The notes beneath the pieces are model-generated. The model did no database searches and was not told the DNA's origin. It was given only the letters and a program-made list of their open reading frames with translations. From Rebecca billardiae RCC1528 (taxonomy: Eukaryota; Protista; Haptophyta): a DNA stretch of 64,000 nucleotides. This document shows, one piece after another, positions 6,865-64,000 of this stretch (the stretch's first letter is position 1; each line of letters starts with the position of its first letter). Where the stretch lies: positions 744,001-808,000 of the forward strand of contig OZ251239.1 in the NCBI GenBank assembly GCA_965240325.2, in the 5' to 3' direction. Position numbers and translations under genes: made by a program.

Positions 6865-9750
6865 TCAGCGGCGGCGCGCGGCGCAGAGCGAGCCCGAGAG
6901 CCGGACCGGATCGGCAGGGCACGCGTCCGCGCTGTCGACAAAGGCGCCGCGCGGCCAGTCGGCCTCGCCGTCCTCGTCCTCGTCGACGCAGGGGGGCGCG
7001 TAGTCCACGCGCACGTCGCGCTCACACCGCTCGCTCTCCTCCGCCGCCACGACCACGCCCCGCCGCTCGAGCGCAGCGAGCGTGCCCTGTGCGGCCGCGC
7101 CCAGCGAGTTGCCGTCGGTCCGGACAATCTCGAGATCGAGATCGGCGGCGGCGGTGAGCGCGGCATCCGGCAGAGAGCTGAGCCGGTTGTCGCGCACGTC
7201 GAGCACGCGCAGCGCGGGCAGCGCGCCGAGCGTCGACTCGGGCAGCTCGGCCAGCCCGTTCTCAGCCACGTGCAGCAGCTCGAGCGACTCTTGCGAGCCC
7301 GCCGCGGCCGACGGCGCCGGCAGCGCGCTCAGCCGATTCGCGGTCGCAAGCAGAGCTTTGAGTGGCGGTCCGTCGGCGTCGAGCAGCCGGGCGGGCAGTG
7401 CGGAGAGAGAGTTGTCAGGCGCGGCGAGCACCTGCAGCCGCGGCAGCGACGCCAGCTCCGTCGGCAGCGCCGACAGCCGGTTCGAGCCCACGTCGAGGTG
7501 CACCAGCGCCGAGCAGAGGCCGAGCTCGGAGGGCAGGCTCGCGATCTGATTGGCCGAGAGGTCGAGGGTGCGTAGCGCCGAGAGCGAGCCGAGCCGCGCG
7601 CTCAGTCGGGCGGGGAAGCCCTCGAGGCCGTTGTGCGCGAAGCTGAGGCTGACCAGCCGCGACAGCCGGCCGAGCTCCGTCGGCAGGTCCGTGATCAGGT
7701 TGTGCCCGAGGTCGAGCGCGCGCAGCGAGCCGCGCGCCGCCGCGAGCGCCGAGCCGTTCACCCGCTCGAGCTGGTTGGTCGACGCGTTGACGGACATCAG
7801 GAGCCCGGAGCTCAGAGCGCCCAGCTCGGTGGGCAGCGCACCGAGGCCCTCGCCCGCCAGGTCGAGCGCCGCGCACGCGCACGCGAGCGGCGTGCCCTGC
7901 GCGGCGCATCCGTACGACACATTCACGCACCCTGCCCACAGCCGGGGGCCGAGGTGCGCGCGGCACTCGGCCTGATGCAGCGCGCGCGTGTCGAGCGAGC
8001 GCAGCGTCGCACTCGCGACGAACAGGCCGAAGGCGGCAGCGGGGACGAGGAGCGCGCTGGCGAGGAGGAGGACGAAGCGGAACGCGCGCCGCGCGCTCGC
8101 GTACGTCAGCGCGAGCGAGCCCACCAGCAGCGCGGCGCCCACGCCGAGCGGCACCCACGCCCAGCCCGCGGCCAGCTGGCACACGGTCACTTCCGGGAAA
8201 GTTCGCTGCACGCCCGCGAACGCGCCCGCCGCGGTCTCGGCGGCGTACGCCCAGCCGAGGCCGACGGCGAGCGCGCACAGCAGGGCGGCCCACGCGCACG
8301 CCGGCGCGAGCAGCCTGAGCAGCTGCCGCACGTCCAGCCGCGGCGGCGGCCTCGACCATCGCGACCACGCCAACTCTCCCAACGGCCCCTCCCGCCAGTT
8401 GTGCCGCACCGCCGCGCGCCGCTGCTTGGTGCGCCACGTGCGCGCGATCGTCGCGGCGGCCGAGCGGCGCGCGCTCTCGTCGATGCGCACGCGCACGTCG
8501 GCGAGGCTCTCCGCGCGCGCGCGCTTGCGCGCAAGGAACCCGCGGAACGCCGCCTGGATCCACACCGCCGCGCGCTCCTCCTGCACAGAGCGAGGCGTCA
8601 CGACTGTGACAGCGGAGCGTGCGAGGACAGGGCTGAGCCACGCGAGCCAGCCGAGCACGCCGTCGCGCGGGAGCTCGCGCACGCGGCGCGGCGGCGCGCG
8701 CGGACCGCCGAGCGCGGCGGCGTACGCGTCGAGCGGCACGCCGCCGACCTCCGCCTCCTCGTACGCCGCCGCCGCCGCGCCGAGCCCGAGCGCGCCGCCG
8801 CCGCCGTCGCCGCCGGCCGCCGGCTCGTCGTACCCCGTGCTCGCATCGTCGGCGCGCAGGCTGCCGCCGCGCGCCTCGAGCGCGGCGCGGAGCGCGGCGC
8901 GGCGCGCGTCGTCGAGCCCCTCGACGCCGCTCAGCTCGAGCTGCAGCGCCGCCGCTCGCCTCGCCACGCCCTCCTGCAGCCGGACCAGTCCGGTGTCCGT
9001 GAGCCGGTAGAGTCCGGACAAGTTGAGGCGGCCTAGGGTAGCGTTGGCGGCCAGCGCCTCTCCGAGCGGCCCCATCGCGCCGTCGCCGATGGCGTAGCAG
9101 CCGGAGAGGTCGAGGGCCGTGAGCGCGCGGTTGGCGCGCAGCCCGAGCCCCAGCTCCACCGCGCCGCGCTCCCCGATCTGCGTGCAGCCGGCCAGGTCGA
9201 GCAGCTGTACCGACGAATTCGACTGCAGCGCGTCGCCCAGGCTGCGCGCCGCGTGGTTGGAGAGCTGCGGGCAGACGGCGAGGCGGAGGACGGAGAGCGA
9301 GCGGTTCTCGCGGAGCGCGCCCGAGAGCTCGAGCACGCCCGCGTCGGTCAGCCGCGAGCAGCGCGACAGGTCGAGCGTGCGCAGCGAGGCGGTCGTGCGC
9401 AGCAGCAGTGCGAGCATGATGCATGCCGTCCGGTCCACGCCCGCGCAGCCGCAGAGCACGAGCACCTCGAGGCCGGGCGCGTGCTCGATGAGCGCAGCGA
9501 CGTTTGTGATCCCGTCGCACGTCAGGTGCGGGCTGTCCGACAGGTCCAGCTCGCGCAGCCGCGAGCGCGCGAGCGCGGGCTCGAGCGCGGGCGTCACGTC
9601 GACGAGCGACTTGTCGGTCAGCCGGCACGCGGTGAGGTCGAGGGTGTCCACGTCCTCCCACGCGGCGTCGGCGACGAGCACGGCCATCTCGCTCTCGCCC
9701 TTACGCCCGCCAAGGCGCAGCACGCCGCCGCGCTGGTGGAACGCCGCCAT
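6865..9750 (-). CDS. LRR (RNI/F-box-type) - IQ motifs - ~3 TM helices - Cys cap - LRR membrane protein
   Basis: N-terminal LDLSxCxxLTDxG repeats, IQAAFRGFLARK, three hydrophobic segments, a Cys-rich cap, then LxxLDLxxNxLxxLP repeats. Single uninterrupted ORF; ATG at 9750. Confidence 0.8.
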   Translation of the reverse strand: MAAFHQRGGVLRLGGRKGESEMAVLVADAAWEDVDTLDLTACRLTDKSLVDVTPALEPALARSRLRELDLSDSPHLTCDGITNVAALIEHAPGLEVLVLCGCAGVDRTACIMLALLLRTTASLRTLDLSRCSRLTDAGVLELSGALRENRSLSVLRLAVCPQLSNHAARSLGDALQSNSSVQLLDLAGCTQIGERGAVELGLGLRANRALTALDLSGCYAIGDGAMGPLGEALAANATLGRLNLSGLYRLTDTGLVRLQEGVARRAAALQLELSGVEGLDDARRAALRAALEARGGSLRADDASTGYDEPAAGGDGGGGALGLGAAAAAYEEAEVGGVPLDAYAAALGGPRAPPRRVRELPRDGVLGWLAWLSPVLARSAVTVVTPRSVQEERAAVWIQAAFRGFLARKRARAESLADVRVRIDESARRSAAATIARTWRTKQRRAAVRHNWREGPLGELAWSRWSRPPPRLDVRQLLRLLAPACAWAALLCALAVGLGWAYAAETAAGAFAGVQRTFPEVTVCQLAAGWAWVPLGVGAALLVGSLALTYASARRAFRFVLLLASALLVPAAAFGLFVASATLRSLDTRALHQAECRAHLGPRLWAGCVNVSYGCAAQGTPLACACAALDLAGEGLGALPTELGALSSGLLMSVNASTNQLERVNGSALAAARGSLRALDLGHNLITDLPTELGRLSRLVSLSFAHNGLEGFPARLSARLGSLSALRTLDLSANQIASLPSELGLCSALVHLDVGSNRLSALPTELASLPRLQVLAAPDNSLSALPARLLDADGPPLKALLATANRLSALPAPSAAAGSQESLELLHVAENGLAELPESTLGALPALRVLDVRDNRLSSLPDAALTAAADLDLEIVRTDGNSLGAAAQGTLAALERRGVVVAAEESERCERDVRVDYAPPCVDEDEDGEADWPRGAFVDSADACPADPVRLSGSLCAARRR

Positions 9751-9927
9751 GCGAAGCCGGTTTGGGGGCCCTGCCGGGCGTCGCCCCAGCAGCACTCCCC
9801 TGGTCCGCAGCCGGCAGCCCCGATTCCCAAATCGGGTCAACGGTTACATCGCGCTACTGGAGTACTGGTTATGGTGGGTACGGTAGCCACGGCGTGCGGG
9901 ACCCCCAGCACGCGGCCGCGTGCACGC

Positions 9928-40581: not shown

Positions 40582-41468
40582 GCCGCGCGCCGGCGGCCAC
40601 GCGCGCCGCGCCTCGGCGGCGCGGCCGCCGCCATCCTCCTTCGTCGCCGCGCGGCGTGCGGGCGGGCTGTTGCACGCTCCGGCGGCGCGCGCGCTCGCTC
40701 GCGAGCCGCGCCCCCGTGTCCGGGCGCGCGGCGCGTGCGTGTGCATCGGCCGCTATGGCCTGGGACCATCCTCACCGCGCCGCGGCTTTGTCGCGGCGCC
40801 ACAAAGTCAATCCGTGACGGCCGAAACGGCAGGACAATCAATACCTGCGGCACCTGCCCAGGCTGCCCCTTCGGACCGCCGGTACACTTATCGCGTCGCC
40901 GCTCGGAATCTGACGATGCATCATTCAGACTGATGCACTCCACTGGCACTGTGACTGGCCGAGCCCGCGACTCCGGGGCCACCGTGGCGTGGCGCCCTGG
41001 CTGGCTGGCTGCCAGGCCGTGTGAGCGGCCTGCGGGCCCGCGGCCCCGGGCCGCGGTGCGGCCACTCACTCATGCACTGCCACTGCCAGCCGCCATGTCG
41101 GGCTCTGCCACAGTCCACTCGGCCACAGTCATCAGGGACAGCCAGTCGGACCCTATGGCTATGGCATTTAATAAGTTCCCCGCGATGGCCATGGCGCCCG
41201 TGCCACTGCCACGTCGTGAAGTATCTGAGCAGCAGTAATCCAGAGTATGATTTATCATGATACACTACTGCCACTGTGACACCATGACTATTGACTGTGT
41301 CACTGTCTGTACTTCAAGTAGCCAGCGTGAGCGGAGCTGCGGCCACGGGGGCGCCGGACCAAGGGTCCGAGTGAGTCGCCTTTACACAGGACCAGGTAGC
41401 CGGACAGGCTGTAGGCTCTGCACTTGTCCTCCCGCGTCGGGTTGTCCCGTCCAAACTGCAGCAGTACG

Positions 41469-44400
41469 ATGGACAGGGATGACGCTCACCCGCTCGACTT
41501 CTCGGCCGTCTTCGAAGATGAGCAAGCCTCCGGGCTCGTGGACCCTGTGACGTACGAGATCATGCGCCACCCCGTGCGCGCCACGGGCACCGGGGAGGTC
41601 TATGACGACGCAGCTCTCGCGCGGTACAACAACGAGAACGACAACGTCGCCGCGGGCATCTCGCCGTTGACCGGCACGCAGCTCGGAGCCATCGTGGCGG
41701 CGGAAGACAAGGCCTCGCAACTCGCCGAGTTGCGGTTGCGGCTCCACGGCAGCCCCAAAGCCGCTGCATCTGCCCCGGCCGCAGCGACCGGTGGGCCCGG
41801 CCAAGCGGACGCCACGCAAGTGCGCTCGATTGAAGACGTGGCTGGCATCTTCCGATGCCTGGACGAGATGCGGCCGGTGCTCGGCGACATGCTCGCTGGG
41901 TGGGAGCCGCCGCGCATTGTGGTCATTGGCTCGACGAGTGTTGGCAAGAGCACGCTGCTCGAGCGCCTCGCGATGATGCCGCTCTTCCCGCGCCAACGTG
42001 GCGTGTGCACGCGCGTGCCCATCCATCTGCGGCTGCGTCGGTGCGCTCCCGAGGACTCGCACGCGCGGCTCGCCGTTCTCAACACGGCGACGCGCGAAGA
42101 GCAGCCGCCGGACGGCCGTATGATCGCCATCGACAGCGGCTGGCGCGAGGTGAGCCAGCGCATGACCGAGATGCTCGCAGACGCTGGTGCGCGCGCGGTG
42201 AGCGGCACGCACGCCATCGTGCTCACGGTGCACCACTCCTCTGTGCCGCTCATCGACCTGGTCGACCTGCCCGGCGTGCAGAGCGACACTCCTGCGAGCC
42301 GCGAGCTCACCGAGGGCATCATCCGAGCGCACGTGGGCACGCGTGCCTCGGACATGTACCTGCTCGTCACCAAGTGGACGACCGGCTGCCGGACCCAGGA
42401 CGCAGGCGGTCTGCTCTTTCTCGACGACGAGACCAAGACGCGCACAGTGGGCGTCCTCACTCACTGCGACAAGGTGCGGGACGCGGAGGACCGCGAATGG
42501 CTTTGCTCGATCATCCAACGCGAGCCGGAGGAGCTCGTGGTCGAAGAGCATGGCATCGCCCGTCTCGCGCCGAATGGCTGGGTGGCCGTCGCCAGCGCCG
42601 AGCCAGTTTCCTCGCCTCCCGCTGCACAGGGGCAGCCGCAGCCGACGGCTGGCCTGCAAAGGCTTCTCGGGTTGCGCCGCTCGGAGCTCGCGCACTTTGG
42701 GTCGGACGACGACCTGCGCAGGCTCGTGGACGAGGGCAGCGCGACGTGTGACGCGCTCGTGCAGCGCCTCGAAACAATGTACCTCAAGGTGCTCGAGGAC
42801 GAGTGGCTTCCGGACACGCTCGGTCGGCTGCGCGAGCACACGCGCGAGCGCGAGCGGCAGCTGCTGCAGCTGGGCCTGCCCGTGCAGCCGACGGACGATG
42901 AGGCGCGCGCCGAGGTGGACCGTCTGCTCTTGCAGGGCTACACACAGCTGGTGGATGCGTGTGTGCTCGAGGTGCTCGAGCCCCTGCGCAGTGCAGCGCG
43001 CCGCGCATGGCCCGACACATTAGTTCAGATGTCCGCGTCTGAGCTGGGCGCGGTGTGGCGGTCGCGCGAGTGGCTGCTGCGCATGCTTATGCACGAGGCG
43101 CTCGACGACTTGCTTGCGCACTGGACGCACGGCCTACGCAAGCTCGTGTACGCGTCGAGTGCCGATGAGACCACCCCGTTCCGCATTGCGCGCTTCGGGT
43201 CGTACGCCGAGCTGGTCGTAGACTGCATGCGCGCGGTGGCCGTCGATGCCATCAACAAGGCGAGCGCAGCGTGTGACGCCATCCTCGAGCGCACCTTCGA
43301 CGCGAGCGACGGCGCCTGGCTGCACGCGGCATTCATGGACAAGTGTGCGTGCGTGCAGCTGCACTTCGACTCCATCGGCTTTGCGGACGCCGTCCTCGCC
43401 TCGTGCGTGCTCCCACTCCCCTCGCTGGAGGTGCTGCAGGCAGCCCACCGCACAGCGACGGCACTCGGCTCCGAGCGCGAGTCGTGCGGCGCCGAGCGCA
43501 CGCGGCTCGAGGAGCAGTGCGCCCAGGCGCGGGCGGCCGGGGCTGAGCTGTGCGTCGGCGTGTGCCGGGCTACGCTCATGCCGCTGTGCGGAGCGCTCGA
43601 GACGACTGGCGCTGAGTTGCTACGCAGGCCGAGTATCAAAGCACGCATTGCACCATGTGACCTTGAGCGAGTGCTGCCAGGGCTCGTGCAGGTGGCCAAG
43701 TTCAATGACTCGCTGACACAGCTCGACCTCTATGCCCTCAAGCTCGGCGACCAGGGCGTGTCTAGCCTCGCCAACGCGCTGAGCGTGAACGGCTCGATCA
43801 CGACGCTAGGCCTTTATTTCGACGACAACATCGGCGACCAGGGCATGTCCAGGCTCGCCGACGCGTTGCGTGTGAACTGCTCGATCACAACGCTGAACCT
43901 CCACAGCCGGAACTTCGGCGGGCAGGGCATGTCCAGCCTCGCCGACGCGCTGCGCGTGAACGGCTCCATCAAGGCACTGGAGCTCGGGGGCGTCAACGAC
44001 GACGTCGGCGACCAGGGCATGTCCAGCCTCGCCGACGCGCTGCGCGTGAATGGCTCGATCACGACGCTGTGCCTTCCTTCCAGCATGAACAACATGAGCA
44101 CCTGGAACTACATCGGCGACCAGGGCATATCCAGGCTCGCCGACGCGTTGCATGTGAACTGCTCGATCACAACGCTGAACCTCCACAGCTGGAACCTCGG
44201 CGAGCAGGGCATGTCCAGCCTCGCCGACGCGCTGCGCGTGAATGGCTCGATCACGACGCTGTGCCTTCATTCCAGCATGAACAACATCGGCACCAGGTAC
44301 TACATCGGCGACCAGGGCATGTCCAGGCTCGCCGACGCGTTGCATGTGAACTGCTCGATCACAACGCTGGACCTCCTCTGCATCGGCGCCAAGGGCATGT

Positions 44401-45182
44401 CCAGCCTCGCCAATGCGCTGCGCGTGAACTGCTCGATCACGTCGCTGCGCCTCTGGGGCGACGACGAAGGCGTGCCCAGCCTCGCCAGCGCGCTGCTCGT
44501 GAACGGCTCGATCACGACGCTGGGCCTCCGCATGAATAACTTCGGCGACCACGACGTGCCCAGTCTCGCCGACGCTCTGCGCATAGACTGCTCGATCACG
44601 ACGCTGAGCCTCTGGGCCCAGAACATCGGCGACGAGGGCGTGTCCTCCAGCCTCGCCGACGCACTGCGCACGAACACCTCCATCACGACGCTGAATCTCG
44701 ACGAGAACTACATCGGCGAACAGGGCGTGTCCCACCTTGCCGACGCACTGCGAGTGAACTGCTCGATCACGACGCTGAATCTCGGCTGGAACAACATCGG
44801 TGACCAGGGCGTGTCCAGCCTCGCCGGCGCACTGCGCGTGAACTCCTCTATCACGGCGCTGAAGCTCGACTGCAACGACATCGGCGACCAGGGCGTGTCC
44901 AGCCTCGCCGACGCCCTGCACGTGAACTCCTCTATCACGACGCTGAATCTCGACTTCAACAACATCGGTGACCAGGGCATGTCCAGCCTCGCCGACGCCC
45001 TGCACGTGAACTCCTCTATCACGACGCTGAATCTCGACGAGAACTGCATCGGCGACGATGGCGTGTCCCGCCTTGTCGACGCGCTGCGCGTGAACAGCTC
45101 GATCACCACGTTGGACATCGTCAGCGGCAACAACATCGGCGACGAGGGCGAGGCCGCCCTCAAAGAGGCGCTGCTGCTGTAG
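41469..45182 (+). CDS. U-box + dynamin/Mx-family GTPase + helical stalk + 17 RI/NLRC3-type LRRs; intronless
   Basis: U-box DPVTYEIMRHPV..TGEVYD..AL...ISPLT. G1 PRIVVIGSTSVGKSTLLE, G2 LFPR..GVCTRVP, G3 LVDLPG, G4 VLTHCD. C-terminal SITTLxLxxNxIGDQGxSSLADALRVN repeats. Confidence 0.9.
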   Translation: MDRDDAHPLDFSAVFEDEQASGLVDPVTYEIMRHPVRATGTGEVYDDAALARYNNENDNVAAGISPLTGTQLGAIVAAEDKASQLAELRLRLHGSPKAAASAPAAATGGPGQADATQVRSIEDVAGIFRCLDEMRPVLGDMLAGWEPPRIVVIGSTSVGKSTLLERLAMMPLFPRQRGVCTRVPIHLRLRRCAPEDSHARLAVLNTATREEQPPDGRMIAIDSGWREVSQRMTEMLADAGARAVSGTHAIVLTVHHSSVPLIDLVDLPGVQSDTPASRELTEGIIRAHVGTRASDMYLLVTKWTTGCRTQDAGGLLFLDDETKTRTVGVLTHCDKVRDAEDREWLCSIIQREPEELVVEEHGIARLAPNGWVAVASAEPVSSPPAAQGQPQPTAGLQRLLGLRRSELAHFGSDDDLRRLVDEGSATCDALVQRLETMYLKVLEDEWLPDTLGRLREHTRERERQLLQLGLPVQPTDDEARAEVDRLLLQGYTQLVDACVLEVLEPLRSAARRAWPDTLVQMSASELGAVWRSREWLLRMLMHEALDDLLAHWTHGLRKLVYASSADETTPFRIARFGSYAELVVDCMRAVAVDAINKASAACDAILERTFDASDGAWLHAAFMDKCACVQLHFDSIGFADAVLASCVLPLPSLEVLQAAHRTATALGSERESCGAERTRLEEQCAQARAAGAELCVGVCRATLMPLCGALETTGAELLRRPSIKARIAPCDLERVLPGLVQVAKFNDSLTQLDLYALKLGDQGVSSLANALSVNGSITTLGLYFDDNIGDQGMSRLADALRVNCSITTLNLHSRNFGGQGMSSLADALRVNGSIKALELGGVNDDVGDQGMSSLADALRVNGSITTLCLPSSMNNMSTWNYIGDQGISRLADALHVNCSITTLNLHSWNLGEQGMSSLADALRVNGSITTLCLHSSMNNIGTRYYIGDQGMSRLADALHVNCSITTLDLLCIGAKGMSSLANALRVNCSITSLRLWGDDEGVPSLASALLVNGSITTLGLRMNNFGDHDVPSLADALRIDCSITTLSLWAQNIGDEGVSSSLADALRTNTSITTLNLDENYIGEQGVSHLADALRVNCSITTLNLGWNNIGDQGVSSLAGALRVNSSITALKLDCNDIGDQGVSSLADALHVNSSITTLNLDFNNIGDQGMSSLADALHVNSSITTLNLDENCIGDDGVSRLVDALRVNSSITTLDIVSGNNIGDEGEAALKEALLL

Positions 45183-45288: not shown

Positions 45289-45890
<602 letters not shown>

Positions 45891-46767: not shown

Positions 46768-46776
<9 letters not shown>

Positions 46777-46854
<78 letters not shown>
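46777..46854. repeat. (GT)n microsatellite
   Basis: Perfect dinucleotide run preceded by a short (TA)n. Confidence 0.98.
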
Positions 46855-46856
<2 letters not shown>

Positions 46857-47214
46857 TGTAGTGTGTGTACTGCATGGTCCGGCCAGCTTGGTTCGGCCGG
46901 ACTTATTTGGCTTAATTATACGGGGCCAACGGCGGACGAGTAACGGAGCTGGCTACTGCCACTGGGGGGGGCGGTGGACCGGAGTCCGGAGCCGGAGCCG
47001 CTGCAACGCGCCAACGGGCCGACGAGGCGTCCGATGCGGGCTTATGAGTGCAGCAGACAGCACAAATATAGAGCCAGAGACTATGAGAGAGTGAGAGACA
47101 TCAGTCAAGAGAGCCGAGAGACGAATCGGCGTCCGCGCCTTCTAGGGCCTGTTGCAAATTGAATAAATACCAACAAATATGTGACGGCGACATCCCAGTG
47201 GGAATCCGCGTGAC

Positions 47215-60147: not shown

Positions 60148-61247
60148 ATGGCGGCAGGAGGCGCCCAGCCGCACCTGGTGGTGCACCAGGCGGAGACGGG
60201 CCTGACGTACCTGCTCGCCCCCGAGGCGTGCACCAGGTGCGCCTCCGCGCCTGCGCCGCGCTGCGCGTGCCATGCGTGCGCACGATGCTCACGCCCGGTC
60301 GGGGGCGCGCCGCGTGCCGCTGCGTGCGTCGCGCGCGCGCAGTGTGGACGCGGTCAAGCATGGGCTGGCACCCGCCGTCGGCGTGGCGCCGGAGCACCAG
60401 ATCCTGATTTTTGAGGGCGACAAACTCGACGACACGCGTGCGCTCGCCGACTACGGCCTGCCGCACGTGCGCGCGCGCGATCATGCGCGCGCGCTCGCGA
60501 GCCCACCGCCCCGCGCGCCGCGCCCGCCGCGCGGGCTGACGTGCAGCACGCCGCCGACGCGCGCCCGCTCGCGCAGGAGTCGCGCGCGATCTACATGTTC
60601 AACCGGCGCATGCTCGCCCGCGACGCCGGCCCGCCGCCGCCGCCGGTGCTGCTGCCGATCGGCGTCGAGGTGCCGCCGGCGCCCGAGCTCCCGCCCGTCC
60701 AGGTCGCGCGCGGCGCGTCGCCGCTCGTGCTCGCGCTGCTCGACTACCGCACGCAGTTCTTCGGCCACCTGTTCAGCGCGCGCGCCTACCACGAGGCGAG
60801 CGGCGCGCGCCTCGAGTCCGTCGTGCAGTCCCTCGCGCAGCAGCGCGTGCAGGCGGACGCGCTCGGCGCGGCGCTGCGCAACCTGCGCTCGTTCGCGGCC
60901 CAGATGAGCGAGCGGTACTCGCGGTTCAAGGAGCGGTTCCACGAGCAGCTGGGGCAGAAGCAGGCGCTGGTCGACTCGTTCGAGGCGGACATCGCGCGGC
61001 TGCGCTCCATCCGGCTGCACCCCATCCTCATCGCCATCGAGGGCATCGGCGCGGCGGACGAGGCGGCGCCGCAGACGCTGCTCGAGTGCTGCGGCGAGGA
61101 GCGGCTGCGCACGTGGCTGCGCGAGTGCGAGCAGCACGCGGACACGCTGGTGTCGCGCGCGGCGGAGCTGGCGACGGCGTACGGCGAGCTCGTGCACTCC
61201 GTCGACGTGCAGGAGCACAGGCCGCTGCTCGTCGGCCCGGACGCGCT

Positions 61248-61287
<40 letters not shown>

Positions 61288-64000
61288 TCGGCCGCGGCCG
61301 CGGCCGAGGCCGCGCCCGCGCCCCCGCTCGGCCCCTCGGCCGGCGCCGACGACCCGCGCGTCGCTGCGGCGCGCGCGCGGCTCGCGGAGCAGGCGGCGAT
61401 CGTGCAGGCGCTCGACCGTGACTACGCGCGCGTGTGCCTCCTCGTCGACGAGCAGGTCGCCGACGCGCACGCGCACGCGCAGCAGGCGGCGAGCGCGTCG
61501 AGCGACGCTGCGGCCGGCTCTGAGAGCGGTGCGCTCGGCGGCAGCCGGCGGCCGAGCGTGGGCGGCAACGTGCGGCTCTCGCAGGAGTGCGCGGCGCTGG
61601 AGGACATCCGCGTGGGGCACCAGGAGGAGCAGCTCCCGGCCATCCTCGCCGCCGACGAGTCCTTCGCCGCGCTGCAGCGCGCCGTCGCCGACGAGCAGGC
61701 GGCGGTGGGCGCGGAGCTGCACGTGCGGCTGCGCGCGGTCTCCTCGCTGCAGGCGGCGATCGCCGAGCTGCGCACCAAGCTCGGCGTGTACGCGACGCTG
61801 CTCGCGCGCGTGCAGAACTACTGCGTGCACCTGGCGTACATGCACGAGCTGCCGCGCACGTACCAGGCGTGCCTCGCGCAGCTCGTCTGCCGCAAGGCGT
61901 ACTCCGACGCCTTCTCCGCGCGCGCTGCGGCCGCGGTCGAGAGCCTGGCCGGGCTGCGCGAGGACGAGTTCAGCGCGCGCATGGCCTTCATGGCGGCGTA
62001 CGGGCGGATGCTGCCGCGCGGGCTGCCGGTGCTGGCGAAGCTGCTGCAGAGCCCGCCGCCGCACTGCGACGTGCGCGTGCCCGCGCCGGAGCTGCCCCCC
62101 GACCTGCCGCGCATCTCGCCGGAGGACGTGGCGAGCGCGGGCGCGCTCGCGGGCGACGCGGACGGCGCCGAGCACGGCGCGGCCGGCGCGGGCGCGCTCG
62201 TCGCCATGGCCGCCGGCGGTGCGGACGCGCCGGCGGTGGCGCACACCGGGCTGGAGGCGCGGCTACGCGTGCTGCAGACGGAGAACGCCAGGCTCCGCGC
62301 CGAGATGGCCTTCCGCGCCATCGCCACGCCCGGCGCGACCACGGGGGCGCTCGGCCTCGAGAGCGCGCCGCTGCCGGCGCCGCCCGCTTCGGCCGCGCAG
62401 CACGACGGCAGCCGCTCGCCCGCAGGGCCGGCGGACGCGGCGGGAGTCGGGGGCGAAGGGGCGGACGCGCGGCCGGTGCTGCCGCCGCGCGCGCACTCGA
62501 CCCCCGCGGTGCCCTCCTCCTCCGCCGCCGCCGCAGCCGCCGCCGCAGCCGCCGCGGCCGCCGCCGACGCGGGCGCGGCCGGCCCCGCGGCCGCGGAGCG
62601 CGCGCTGCATGCGCTGCGGCTGCAGCACAGCTACTCGGCCGAGCTGCAGCGGCGGCTGGAGGAGCAGGAGGCGCAGGTGCGCAAGTACGAGGAGAGGATC
62701 GCGCAGCTCGAGGCGGCGCTCTCGCCGCCCGCGCCCGCGCTCGCCACCGTCGACGCGCCGCCGCGCGCCCACGCCGCGCAGCAGCTCGAGCCGCCCTCGG
62801 CCGCGCCCGCGCTCTCGCCGCGCGCGGCCGCGCCGCCGTCGCCCGCCGAGGGCGCGGCCGCCGCGGCTGCGTCGGCGTCCAGCGGTGGGGGCGCGGATGG
62901 CGGCAGCGCGCTGAGCTCGCTGGCCGTCGTCGCGCCGGCCGCGCCGGCCGCGCTCGGCGCGTGCGACCTCGGCGACGTGTCCGTCGCGCGCACCACCTCC
63001 GCGGGGAGCGAGCTGTCCTCAGCTGCAGGCGCCTCAGCGAGCGCGGTCGTCGCCGCGCTGAGCGCCGCGCCTGCGGCGGCGGCGGCGGAGGCGGCTCTGA
63101 CCGCCGCGGCGCCGGCTGCGGCCGCGCTCGGCGCCGCAGTGGATGCGGTGCCCGGCGCCGCGCAGCCCGCGGGCGCGGCCGTGGCCCTCCCGGCCGCCGG
63201 CAGCCCAGGCAGCCCAGGCAGCCCAGGCAGCGCGTGCGCCCCATCCGCCGCCGCTCGCGCCTCGAGCGCATCGGCGCCCTCGCCGCCGCCGCCGCCGGCT
63301 GCGAGCGCCGAGCGCGCGGCCGGCGCGGCGTCGGAGGGCGGCGGCGCGCCGCGCGCGCTGCGCGTGCTCAGGCAGGGCATCGCGGAGGTGCGCGCGCGCC
63401 GCACGCGCGGCGGGGGCGGGGGCCGCCGATGCGCGCGTGTGCGCCGTCGCCGATCGCGCCCGCTCACGCCGAGCCGCGCGCCCCACGCGCCTTGCAGGCG
63501 CGCCGCTGCCTCCCGCCGAGCCCAAGCCAGGCGGATGCGCACGGCGCGGCGGCGAGCGCGCCCGCGGCCAGCGGCGCCGCGCCTGCGGACGCGGACGCGC
63601 AGGCTGTGGACGCGCTGCTCTCCTCGGCGCGGCAGGCGGCGCGCGCCAACATGACGCTCGGGCGCGCGCTGCAGCAGACGCGCGCGCTCGCGCAGTCGCG
63701 CATCGCGTACACCTCGATCGAGCCGGGCGCGCGGGTCCTCTTCGTCGCAGCGCCAAGCACGGTGTGGCGCGCGGCGCGGCGCGCGGCGGGGGCGGCGCGC
63801 GCGTGCGCCGGGGGCGGCCGGGCGGTGCGCGGTGCTGACCGCGCGCCAGCCCCCCCGCGCGCTCGCGCAGGCGCCGCGCGCGGACGCGCCGGCCGGCGCG
63901 TCCGGCTGCTTCGTCGCGTACACCAAGGGGCTGCCCAACCGGTTCCTGGCGCCCGCGTGCGTGCACGCCTTCTTCAGGGGCGCGGCTGCGGCGGCGGCTG
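60148..64000 (+). CDS. ATG11: Autophagy scaffold ATG11/RB1CC1 (FIP200); multi-exon, 3'-truncated
   Basis: Spliced N-terminal ubiquitin-like domain (VHQAETG..SVDAVK..GVAPEHQILI..KLD..RALADYGLP..IYMFNR), FEADIARLRSIRLHP, coiled coils, and the start of the Claw domain RIAYTSIEPGARVLFV..FVAY...NRFL. Confidence 0.85.

Follow-up and report, generated by a model that had tools for sequence, protein, structure and literature searches.

A Predicted U-Box, Mx-Like Dynamin and Leucine-Rich Repeat Protein of Rebecca billardiae, Member of an Apparently Undescribed Modular Protist Family

Introduction

Mx-like dynamins have recently been shown to be ancient and widespread, although what they do outside animals is not known (Langley et al., 2025; PMC11789081). 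Mx-like, MADS and PADS dynamin lineages have been described in haptophytes in the same study, which mentions neither ubiquitin nor RING, U-box or leucine-rich repeat (LRR) domains (PMC11789081). Here we describe a gene of the haptophyte Rebecca billardiae RCC1528 whose predicted product carries a U-box, a dynamin-type GTPase with its stalk, and an LRR array in a single chain. The gene lies in a stretch of 64,000 nucleotides (nt) of contig OZ251239.1 (positions 744,001–808,000 of the forward strand, assembly GCA_965240325.2), the whole of which was analyzed and is referred to below as the window. Judged by its sequence, the protein is a member of a large family of protists, apparently undescribed, with a constant U-box and dynamin core and an interchangeable C-terminal module.

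Dynamin-superfamily proteins form G-domain dimers in the GTP state and polymers via their stalks, and the N- and C-terminal ends of the chain come together in the bundle-signalling element (BSE) next to the G domain. Mx proteins share with the R. billardiae protein a dynamin-type G domain, a three-helix BSE, a four-helix stalk and the lack of a PH domain. Unlike Mx proteins, the R. billardiae protein carries an N-terminal U-box and C-terminal LRRs, its G4 motif is T-x-C-D and not T-K-x-D, the Gln of the P-loop is replaced, and the Pfam models Dynamin_M and GED stay below significance.

U-box and RING ligases generally need dimerization to activate E2~Ub, and TRIM5alpha is activated by the clustering of its RING domains on a lattice. 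TRIM proteins (TRIM5alpha, TRIM-NHL) resemble the U-box/dynamin family in having an N-terminal RING-class E3 fold, a helical self-assembly module and a swappable C-terminal binder, and NHL and filamin C-termini are common to the family and to TRIM-NHL proteins. Yet the R. billardiae protein has a U-box, without zinc ligands, in place of the RING domain, no B-box, and a dynamin GTPase with stalk in place of the coiled coil; the Pfam scan of the protein matched none of the zinc RING, B-box and coiled-coil families. There is no sequence homology to TRIM proteins beyond the E3 fold, and the protein is an analogue of these and not a member. To our knowledge, this would be the first case of a TRIM-like ligase with a dynamin-type motor in the place of its coiled coil.

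An earlier reading of the DNA letters and their translations, here called the sequence-only reading, had likened the protein to nucleotide-binding LRR receptors (NLRs). The order of effector, NTPase and LRR is indeed that of NLR/STAND receptors, and the LRRs, which are of the ribonuclease inhibitor (RI) type, have their nearest counterparts in NLRP and NOD2 proteins. The likeness holds as an analogy of domain order and does not extend to the STAND module, as the NTPase is a dynamin-type GTPase and not a NACHT/NB-ARC ATPase. With Pfam no NACHT or NB-ARC match was obtained in the protein, and the only P-loop matches of this kind, to AAA_16 (E = 0.35) and AAA_28 (E = 0.019), were below the cut-off. 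Most relatives, moreover, have no LRR. We regard the layout as TRIM-like rather than NLR-like because a constant core of E3 domain and oligomerizing module is combined with a swappable binder; the NLR analogy is weaker because the STAND module is missing and the LRR array is one of many interchangeable C-termini.

Two further systems share parts of this architecture. Plant U-box (PUB) ARM ligases also combine a U-box with a C-terminal repeat solenoid. Two family members (numbered with P below), P0046 and P0002, have ARM repeats, those of P0046 also matching the PUB ARM model, and rice and soybean PUB U-boxes are among the best structural matches of the R. billardiae U-box. In the family, unlike in the PUB-ARM ligases, a dynamin-type GTPase and its stalk, ∼600 residues together, separate the U-box from the repeats. 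ROCO proteins of the LRRK2 type likewise have LRRs and a GTPase in a single chain, but the GTPase is Roc-COR and not dynamin, the LRRs are N-terminal of it, and there is no E3 domain. Pfam gave no Roc or COR match in the R. billardiae protein, and weak Roc matches at the level of the P-loop were seen in two homologs only.

The Dynamin-Type GTPase and Its Stalk

A Pfam scan placed Dynamin_N at residues 150–332 with 68 bits against a cut-off of 27 (E = 1.3e-18), and the best single-sequence match of the GTPase in the PDB was MxB. The four dynamin G-motifs claimed in the sequence-only reading, with THCD as G4, are confirmed by this match and by the alignment with MxB. The Mx counterparts of G1 and G4 are GDQSSGKS and TKPD, as compared with GSTSVGKS and THCD in R. 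billardiae. G1, G2 and G3 count as canonical, and G4 retains the Asp that gives specificity. Residues 1–760 were aligned with 65 relatives (alignment A1, 66 sequences). At least 90% of these 66 family members share G154, G159, K160, S161, the switch-I residue T181, D266 and G269, while the Asp of G4, D334, is invariant and the family consensus for this motif is T-x-C-D.

The AlphaFold2 model of residues 1–760, built on alignment A1, has a predicted local distance difference test (pLDDT) score of 86.2 and a predicted template modeling score (pTM) of 0.80. The model shows a disordered linker at residues 101–120, the G domain, the BSE helices, a four-helix stalk and a long C-terminal helix. Foldseek searches of the PDB with this model gave full-length matches to dynamin, MxA, MxB, Drp1, Mgm1 and OPA1, and the best 30 structural matches in Swiss-Prot were all Mx proteins that aligned end to end, in keeping with the helical stalk that had been read from the sequence.

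The family profile was also compared with known structures. Its positions 140–704 aligned with chain residues 25–598 of MxA (E = 2e-41), alongside a match to CmDnm1 (E = 5e-42), and its N-terminal part matched the U-box ligases LubX (6e-16), PUB12 (4e-15) and CHIP. The ranking of the resemblances is mixed, with CmDnm1 slightly ahead by profile, MxB by single sequence and the Mx proteins by structure. The Pfam scan of the protein showed neither a PH domain nor a transmembrane segment or any other lipid-binding module. Going by homology and the model, the protein is a classical dynamin-superfamily protein of Mx-like layout, where Mx-like refers to layout and similarity and not to a placement in a tree among the named clades.

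A small structured element interrupts the C-terminal part of the stalk. Residues 610–673 (nt 43296–43487) are modeled with confidence as a beta-hairpin and two short helices inserted before the GED-like helix, in a region where the family consensus is not conserved. In the model, the insert possibly lies at the stalk tip, a place taken by loop L4 in Mx and by the PH domain in dynamin.

The U-Box Domain

As the U-box was the only doubtful module, it was tested in three ways. The Pfam U-box model matched residues 23–59 of the whole protein with 15.5 bits and reached 20.3 bits when residues 1–100 were scanned alone, still under the cut-off of 21.4. A family U-box profile made from 42 relatives, with the R. 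billardiae protein left out, matched residues 18–90 of the latter with 34.8 bits, and PF04564 was matched by all 43 of the 43 aligned N-terminal segments of the family (E ≤ 0.01). The AlphaFold2 model of residues 1–100 had a pLDDT of 82.9 overall and of ∼95 in the core. Its top Foldseek matches in the PDB were all U-boxes (OsCIE1, LubX, GmPUB13, Prp19, CHIP, E4B, and Ufd2), with TM-scores by target of 0.73–0.78 and a root mean square deviation of ∼2 Å; the RING domains of TRIM21 and TRIM69 were also among the matches.

Y45 and P66 are invariant across the U-boxes of the family, and the hydrophobic E2-contact positions are retained in the R. billardiae protein. This copy also shows substitutions, as the conserved Arg of the Y-E/D-R motif is changed to Asp and the helix Trp to Tyr, and one residue is inserted in the D-G turn. 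By homology and modeled fold, residues 18–95 are a U-box, in a divergent copy, and a predicted ligase. The U-box of the sequence-only reading thus stands on the family profile and the AlphaFold2 and Foldseek results, although the Pfam score is sub-threshold. The three-part layout claimed for one intronless open reading frame (ORF) of ∼1237 amino acids (aa), with U-box, dynamin and LRR, is real, and all modules look intact.

A Protist Family With Interchangeable C-Terminal Modules

Relatives were searched exhaustively by HMMER with residues 1–760 against 1.84 billion representative proteins (50% identity). This gave 1791 matches at E ≤ 1e-3, 432 at E ≤ 1e-10 and 87 at E ≤ 1e-30. No close, conserved orthologue came to light (the sequence-only reading had named a single-copy, widely conserved one as evidence against itself), the best match among the 1.84 billion representatives being 47% identical. 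The nearest relatives (41–47% identical) are from Pavlovales sp. CCMP2436, with up to 52% identity over the BLASTP local alignment among the matches listed. Other named members come from the green alga Cymbomonas tetramitiformis, from Chrysochromulina tobinii and from MMETSP transcriptomes, and most of the remaining members are encoded on short contigs of marine metagenomes. The MMETSP transcript P0025 shows that a U-box-dynamin homolog is transcribed as a single mRNA in another species. In the ESM Atlas the nearest neighbor was an 84-member “hypothetical protein” cluster (score 0.94), mostly from Haptophyta, with Dynamin_N in 95% and a U-box in 92%.

The core of the family is constant. Among the best 151 matches, the family profile found a U-box in 96, always in N-terminal position, and in 95 of the 102 that have at least 60 residues before the first BSE helix. 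Twelve members (P0001, P0007, P0012, P0014, P0030, P0043, P0049, P0058, P0062, P0083, P0100, and P0126) have two tandem U-boxes, which could form an intramolecular U-box dimer.

The C-terminal modules, read from Pfam scans of ∼50 family members, are in contrast interchangeable. We found NHL (P0009, P0010, P0021, P0036, P0049, and P0083), WD40 (P0024 and P0032), Kelch (P0126), ARM (P0046 and P0002, the latter also with ankyrin), LRR (P0011 and P0016), filamin (P0014, P0018, and P0027), Neuralized (P0007 and P0054) and TLDc modules (P0078) as well as decapeptide repeats (P0066), while the rest of the scanned members had an unrecognized C-terminal module or none. P0011 has the U-box/dynamin/LRR order of the R. 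billardiae protein and aligns with it end to end over 1073 columns, and the partial Pavlovales protein P0004 enters RI-type LRRs directly after the stalk.

The G domain and stalk of 66 family rows and of five canonical dynamin-superfamily outgroups, two of them from IMG/VR, were placed in a quick maximum-likelihood tree. The family is split from the outgroups with an SH-aLRT support of 99, at a point where long branches meet, and the R. billardiae protein groups with two Pavlovales proteins (support 100). NHL modules appear in two separate clades of this tree, filamin in two and LRR in two or three. The Cymbomonas proteins P0013 and P0016 are 94% identical over the 801 aa to the end of the stalk and then continue into unrelated C-termini, LRR_6 in P0016 and a region weakly resembling DUF4336 in P0013; a U-box is absent from both. 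The pair reflects either the exchange of a cassette in the very recent past or gene models that are alternative or artefactual. Swapped terminal domains, which the sequence-only reading had proposed to look for among the relatives, are strongly borne out by the C-terminal repertoire, the tree and this pair.

A fusion of U-box and dynamin is described nowhere in the literature that we searched by domain names and Pfam accessions. A survey of giant-virus homologs from 2025 handles dynamin and U-box separately, and the database entries for the family read “hypothetical” or “U-box domain-containing” only. The literature searched therefore agrees with the sequence-only reading that no characterized family has such an architecture, yet the databases hold many uncharacterized homologs. 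The fusion of an Mx-like dynamin with a U-box ligase, both of known kinds, would on sequence grounds define an undescribed modular family.

A viral origin was considered and rejected. The IMG/VR scan gave only three distant canonical dynamins (L004 68–1996, L005 366–2144, and L006), of which L004 and L006 are on contigs of giant-virus metagenome-assembled genomes. L004 and L005 have Dynamin_N, Dynamin_M and GED and no U-box (L006 was outside the Pfam scan), and they may belong to the dynamin clades that Langley et al. (2025) associate with viruses.

The Leucine-Rich Repeat Array

Pfam matched LRR_6 in the C-terminal part of the protein (E = 1.2e-26), and the best PDB sequence matches of the region were ribonuclease inhibitor and the LRRs of NLRP and NOD2. 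The sequence-only reading had counted 17 RI-type LRRs. The type is confirmed; as to the number, we count 16 full LRRs with an L-A-D-A-L helix, together with an N-cap and a C-terminal half unit. Tandem Repeats Finder (TRF) gave periods of 84, 168, 192 and 252 bp in the array.

Per-position entropy showed that the scaffold of the repeats (L-A-D-A-L and N-x-S-I-T-T-L) is nearly invariant, and that variation falls on unit positions 24, 26, 27, 28, 1 and 2. These are x5, x7, x8, N9 and x10 of LxxLxLxxNxL together with a moderately variable Ile/Leu at position 2; N9 corresponds to unit position 28, where only some units have Asn. Changes in unit length fall at the same place. The variable positions are predicted to form an exposed binding face made up of the strand face and the ascending loop.

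We counted 16 nonsynonymous changes and no synonymous one (Fisher p = 0.026) between the two adjacent 64-residue blocks of the array, which are copies of a 192-bp unit; most of the variation is concentrated directly after the beta strand. Between nearest-neighbor repeat pairs, the proportion of nonsynonymous differences (pN) was 0.36 at the variable positions, while the scaffold had a pN of 0.10 and a proportion of synonymous differences (pS) of 0.16, a contrast that is suggestive only, because the positions were chosen post hoc and the repeat pairs are not independent.

Proposed Function and Alternatives

The explanation that we favor, with somewhat more confidence than doubt, is that of a modular protein made up of a U-box, an Mx-like dynamin and a swappable binder, which acts as an assembly-activated E3 ligase and for which defence or genetic conflict is the likeliest context. 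The surface of the LRRs would bind a target, and GTP-controlled dimerization of the G domains and polymerization of the stalks, as in Mx and dynamin, would gather and pair the U-boxes. Because U-box and RING ligases generally need dimerization, this assembly could switch on the ligase, so that ubiquitin would be transferred to the bound target or to the assembled protein itself. Since the termini of dynamins meet in the BSE, the U-box and the LRRs would sit side by side at this same end of the molecule. The C-terminal module would select the target, and the dynamin motor would stand in for the B-box and coiled coil of TRIM proteins. Ligase activity, its activation by assembly, the target and the role in defence we infer from analogy with these systems, unlike the domains, the catalytic motifs, the family and the swapping of modules. 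Hundreds of protist proteins have an Mx-layout dynamin hard-wired to a ubiquitin ligase domain and to an interchangeable target-binding domain, which makes the assembly-activated E3 ligase a concrete hypothesis that can be tested; swaps of specificity that experiments could use occur naturally within the family.

A role in defence or genetic conflict, e.g., against giant viruses, is plausible as the most likely context by analogy. It is suggested by the diversity and patchy distribution of the family, the swapping of modules, the nonsynonymous-only divergence on the LRR face and the antiviral precedent of Mx. The proteins would then be candidates for a defence repertoire in algae that matter ecologically and are subject to attack by giant viruses. 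A bolder proposal, which we put forward tentatively and with more doubt than belief, is that U-box/dynamin proteins are a new class of innate-immune effectors, the “TRIM-like Mx proteins” of marine protists, in which swappable binders would recognize structures of pathogens, for instance the capsids or factories of giant viruses, and Mx-type GTP-driven polymerization would switch on ubiquitination. If true, this would link Mx restriction with TRIM5-type lattice-activated ligases, which are known only separately in animals, and it would support an ancestral antiviral role of Mx-like dynamins.

Several observations weigh against an assembly-activated ligase with a role in defence. The U-box is the most divergent of those inspected, scores below the Pfam cut-off and has both the conserved Arg and the conserved Trp replaced; in this copy its ligase activity may be weak or absent, and its modeled fold could derive from the stronger U-boxes in the alignment. 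In the GTPase, the catalytic Gln of the P-loop is replaced by Thr and the Lys of G4 by His, and the kinetics may therefore differ, while Pfam Dynamin_M and GED gave no match in the protein. The variable LRR positions were picked after the entropy profile had been viewed, and the strong GC bias at third codon positions (GC3) alone could suppress synonymous change. The neighboring genes are of the housekeeping kind and do not make up a defence island. Finally, there is no transcript evidence for the gene, as searches with the gene and its flanks (RNA runs) and with its N-terminal part (runs of any kind) matched no listed sequencing run.

The first of these points leads to a reading in which the U-box of this copy is degenerate and the protein is an LRR-aimed, Mx-like restriction or scaffolding GTPase without ligase activity. 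The Pfam score under the cut-off, the Arg to Asp and Trp to Tyr changes and the one-residue insertion in the D-G turn all fit with this. Yet this copy keeps Y45 and P66, which never vary in the family, as well as the hydrophobic positions of E2 contact, the fold is predicted at a pLDDT of ∼95, the family profile scores 34.8 bits and the ORF shows no decay, and we consider this the least probable of the alternatives. A housekeeping or regulatory E3 family is also unlikely, if slightly less so. Here the dynamin part would localize the ligase at membranes or organelles (fission sites, endosomes, plastid or mitochondrion) and the repeats would choose endogenous substrates, with no role in defence. 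Membrane remodeling is typical of most dynamin-superfamily proteins, TRIM-NHL and plant U-box-ARM ligases are mostly developmental or regulatory, one homolog matches the plant PUB ARM model, and the genomic neighbors are ordinary. The protein itself, however, has no PH, transmembrane or other lipid-binding module, and its structure is closest to the membrane-independent Mx proteins. The closest relative in a genome from the same taxonomic order is only 47% identical, module swaps are frequent, and the LRR duplicates diverge by nonsynonymous changes only, none of which is usual for conserved housekeeping genes.

The strongest of the alternatives, although still rather improbable in our view, is an NLR-style receptor. 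The LRR array would auto-inhibit the protein until a ligand frees the dynamin part for nucleotide exchange and for the formation of a resistosome- or inflammasome-like oligomer, so that the U-box would be a downstream effector rather than a tagger of the ligand. In addition to the NLR-like order of effector, NTPase and LRR and the closeness in sequence of the LRRs to ribonuclease inhibitor, NLRP and NOD2, the hypervariable LRR surface, the recent duplication within the array and a family that is diverse and patchy in its distribution would all be expected of such a receptor. The missing STAND (NACHT/NB-ARC) module argues against it, and so do the C-termini of most relatives: NHL, WD40, Kelch, ARM, filamin and Neuralized modules are typical substrate binders of E3 ligases, TRIM proteins among them, and not NLR sensors. 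Auto-inhibition by the LRRs is furthermore pure conjecture, the models spanning residues 1–760 and 1–100 and not the LRR array.

The Locus and Its Genomic Surroundings

The positions of the gene, its domains and motifs in the window are given in Table 1. In the ORF list, the open frame spans 41424–45182 (+), and its first ATG, at 41469, yields the 1237-aa protein. The GC content at the first, second and third codon positions of the ORF (GC1/GC2/GC3) is 0.66/0.47/0.87, which is the coding pattern expected for the genome of R. billardiae; the window as a whole is very GC-rich (0.57–0.83 in 2-kb bins). The codon bias is less extreme than in the neighboring ORFs (GC3 of 0.90–0.95), as had been stated in the sequence-only reading, but the difference is only mild.

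Table 1. Positions in the window of the U-box/dynamin/LRR gene and its features, with the evidence for each.
Feature	Residues	Position (nt)	Strand	Evidence
Complete intronless coding sequence, 1237 aa + stop		41469..45182	+	ORF list, GC by codon position, end-to-end alignment with P0011
U-box, divergent	18–95	41520..41753	+	Pfam (sub-threshold), family profile, AlphaFold2/Foldseek
Flexible linker, low confidence	96–120	41754..41828	+	pLDDT < 50 at residues 101–120
First BSE helix	121–141	41829..41891	+	AlphaFold2 helix; inside Mx alignments starting at residue 102–106
Dynamin-type GTPase domain	146–394	41904..42650	+	Pfam Dynamin_N, MxB motif alignment, family conservation
G1		41928–41951	+	GSTSVGKS in MxB alignment
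G2 Thr		42009–42011	+	CTRVP in MxB alignment
G3		42264–42275	+	DLPG in MxB alignment
G4		42459–42470	+	THCD in MxB alignment
BSE helix 2, four-helix stalk with small beta insert, GED-like C-terminal helix	395–718	42651..43622	+	AlphaFold2, family profile against MxA, Foldseek
RI-type LRR array, 16 full units of 25–36 aa + caps	746–1237	43704..45179	+	Pfam LRR_6, PDB matches, unit list, TRF
Tandem duplication of a two-repeat 192-bp block	846–909, 910–973	44004..44387	+	TRF period 192, 90% matches

The sequence-only reading had also placed the gene in a repeat-rich island. Two pure microsatellites, (TCTA)55 and (TG)45, do lie just downstream of the gene at 45322–45539 and 46776–46868, where the local GC content is 0.57–0.61, but the neighbors are ordinary housekeeping genes. 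The flanking genes encode metallophosphatase, lactate permease, sulfotransferase-like, EamA, IQ/ARM, Fringe-like, WD40 and ATG17-like proteins.

No second copy of the gene was found in the window, as tblastn with the N-terminal 760 aa recovers the gene itself only. The sole other LRR match in the window was considered as a paralogue and rejected, since it is an unrelated LRR/IQ protein. This 992-aa ORF at 6868–9843 (−) contains LRR_4, LRR_8 and LRR_6 repeats and an IQ motif, and is in part 31–38% identical to the RI-type repeats of the U-box/dynamin/LRR gene. Toward the end of the window, a 1079-aa ORF at 60415–63651 (+) with a GC3 of 0.94 has an ATG17-like (ATG11/ATG17) autophagy scaffold domain.

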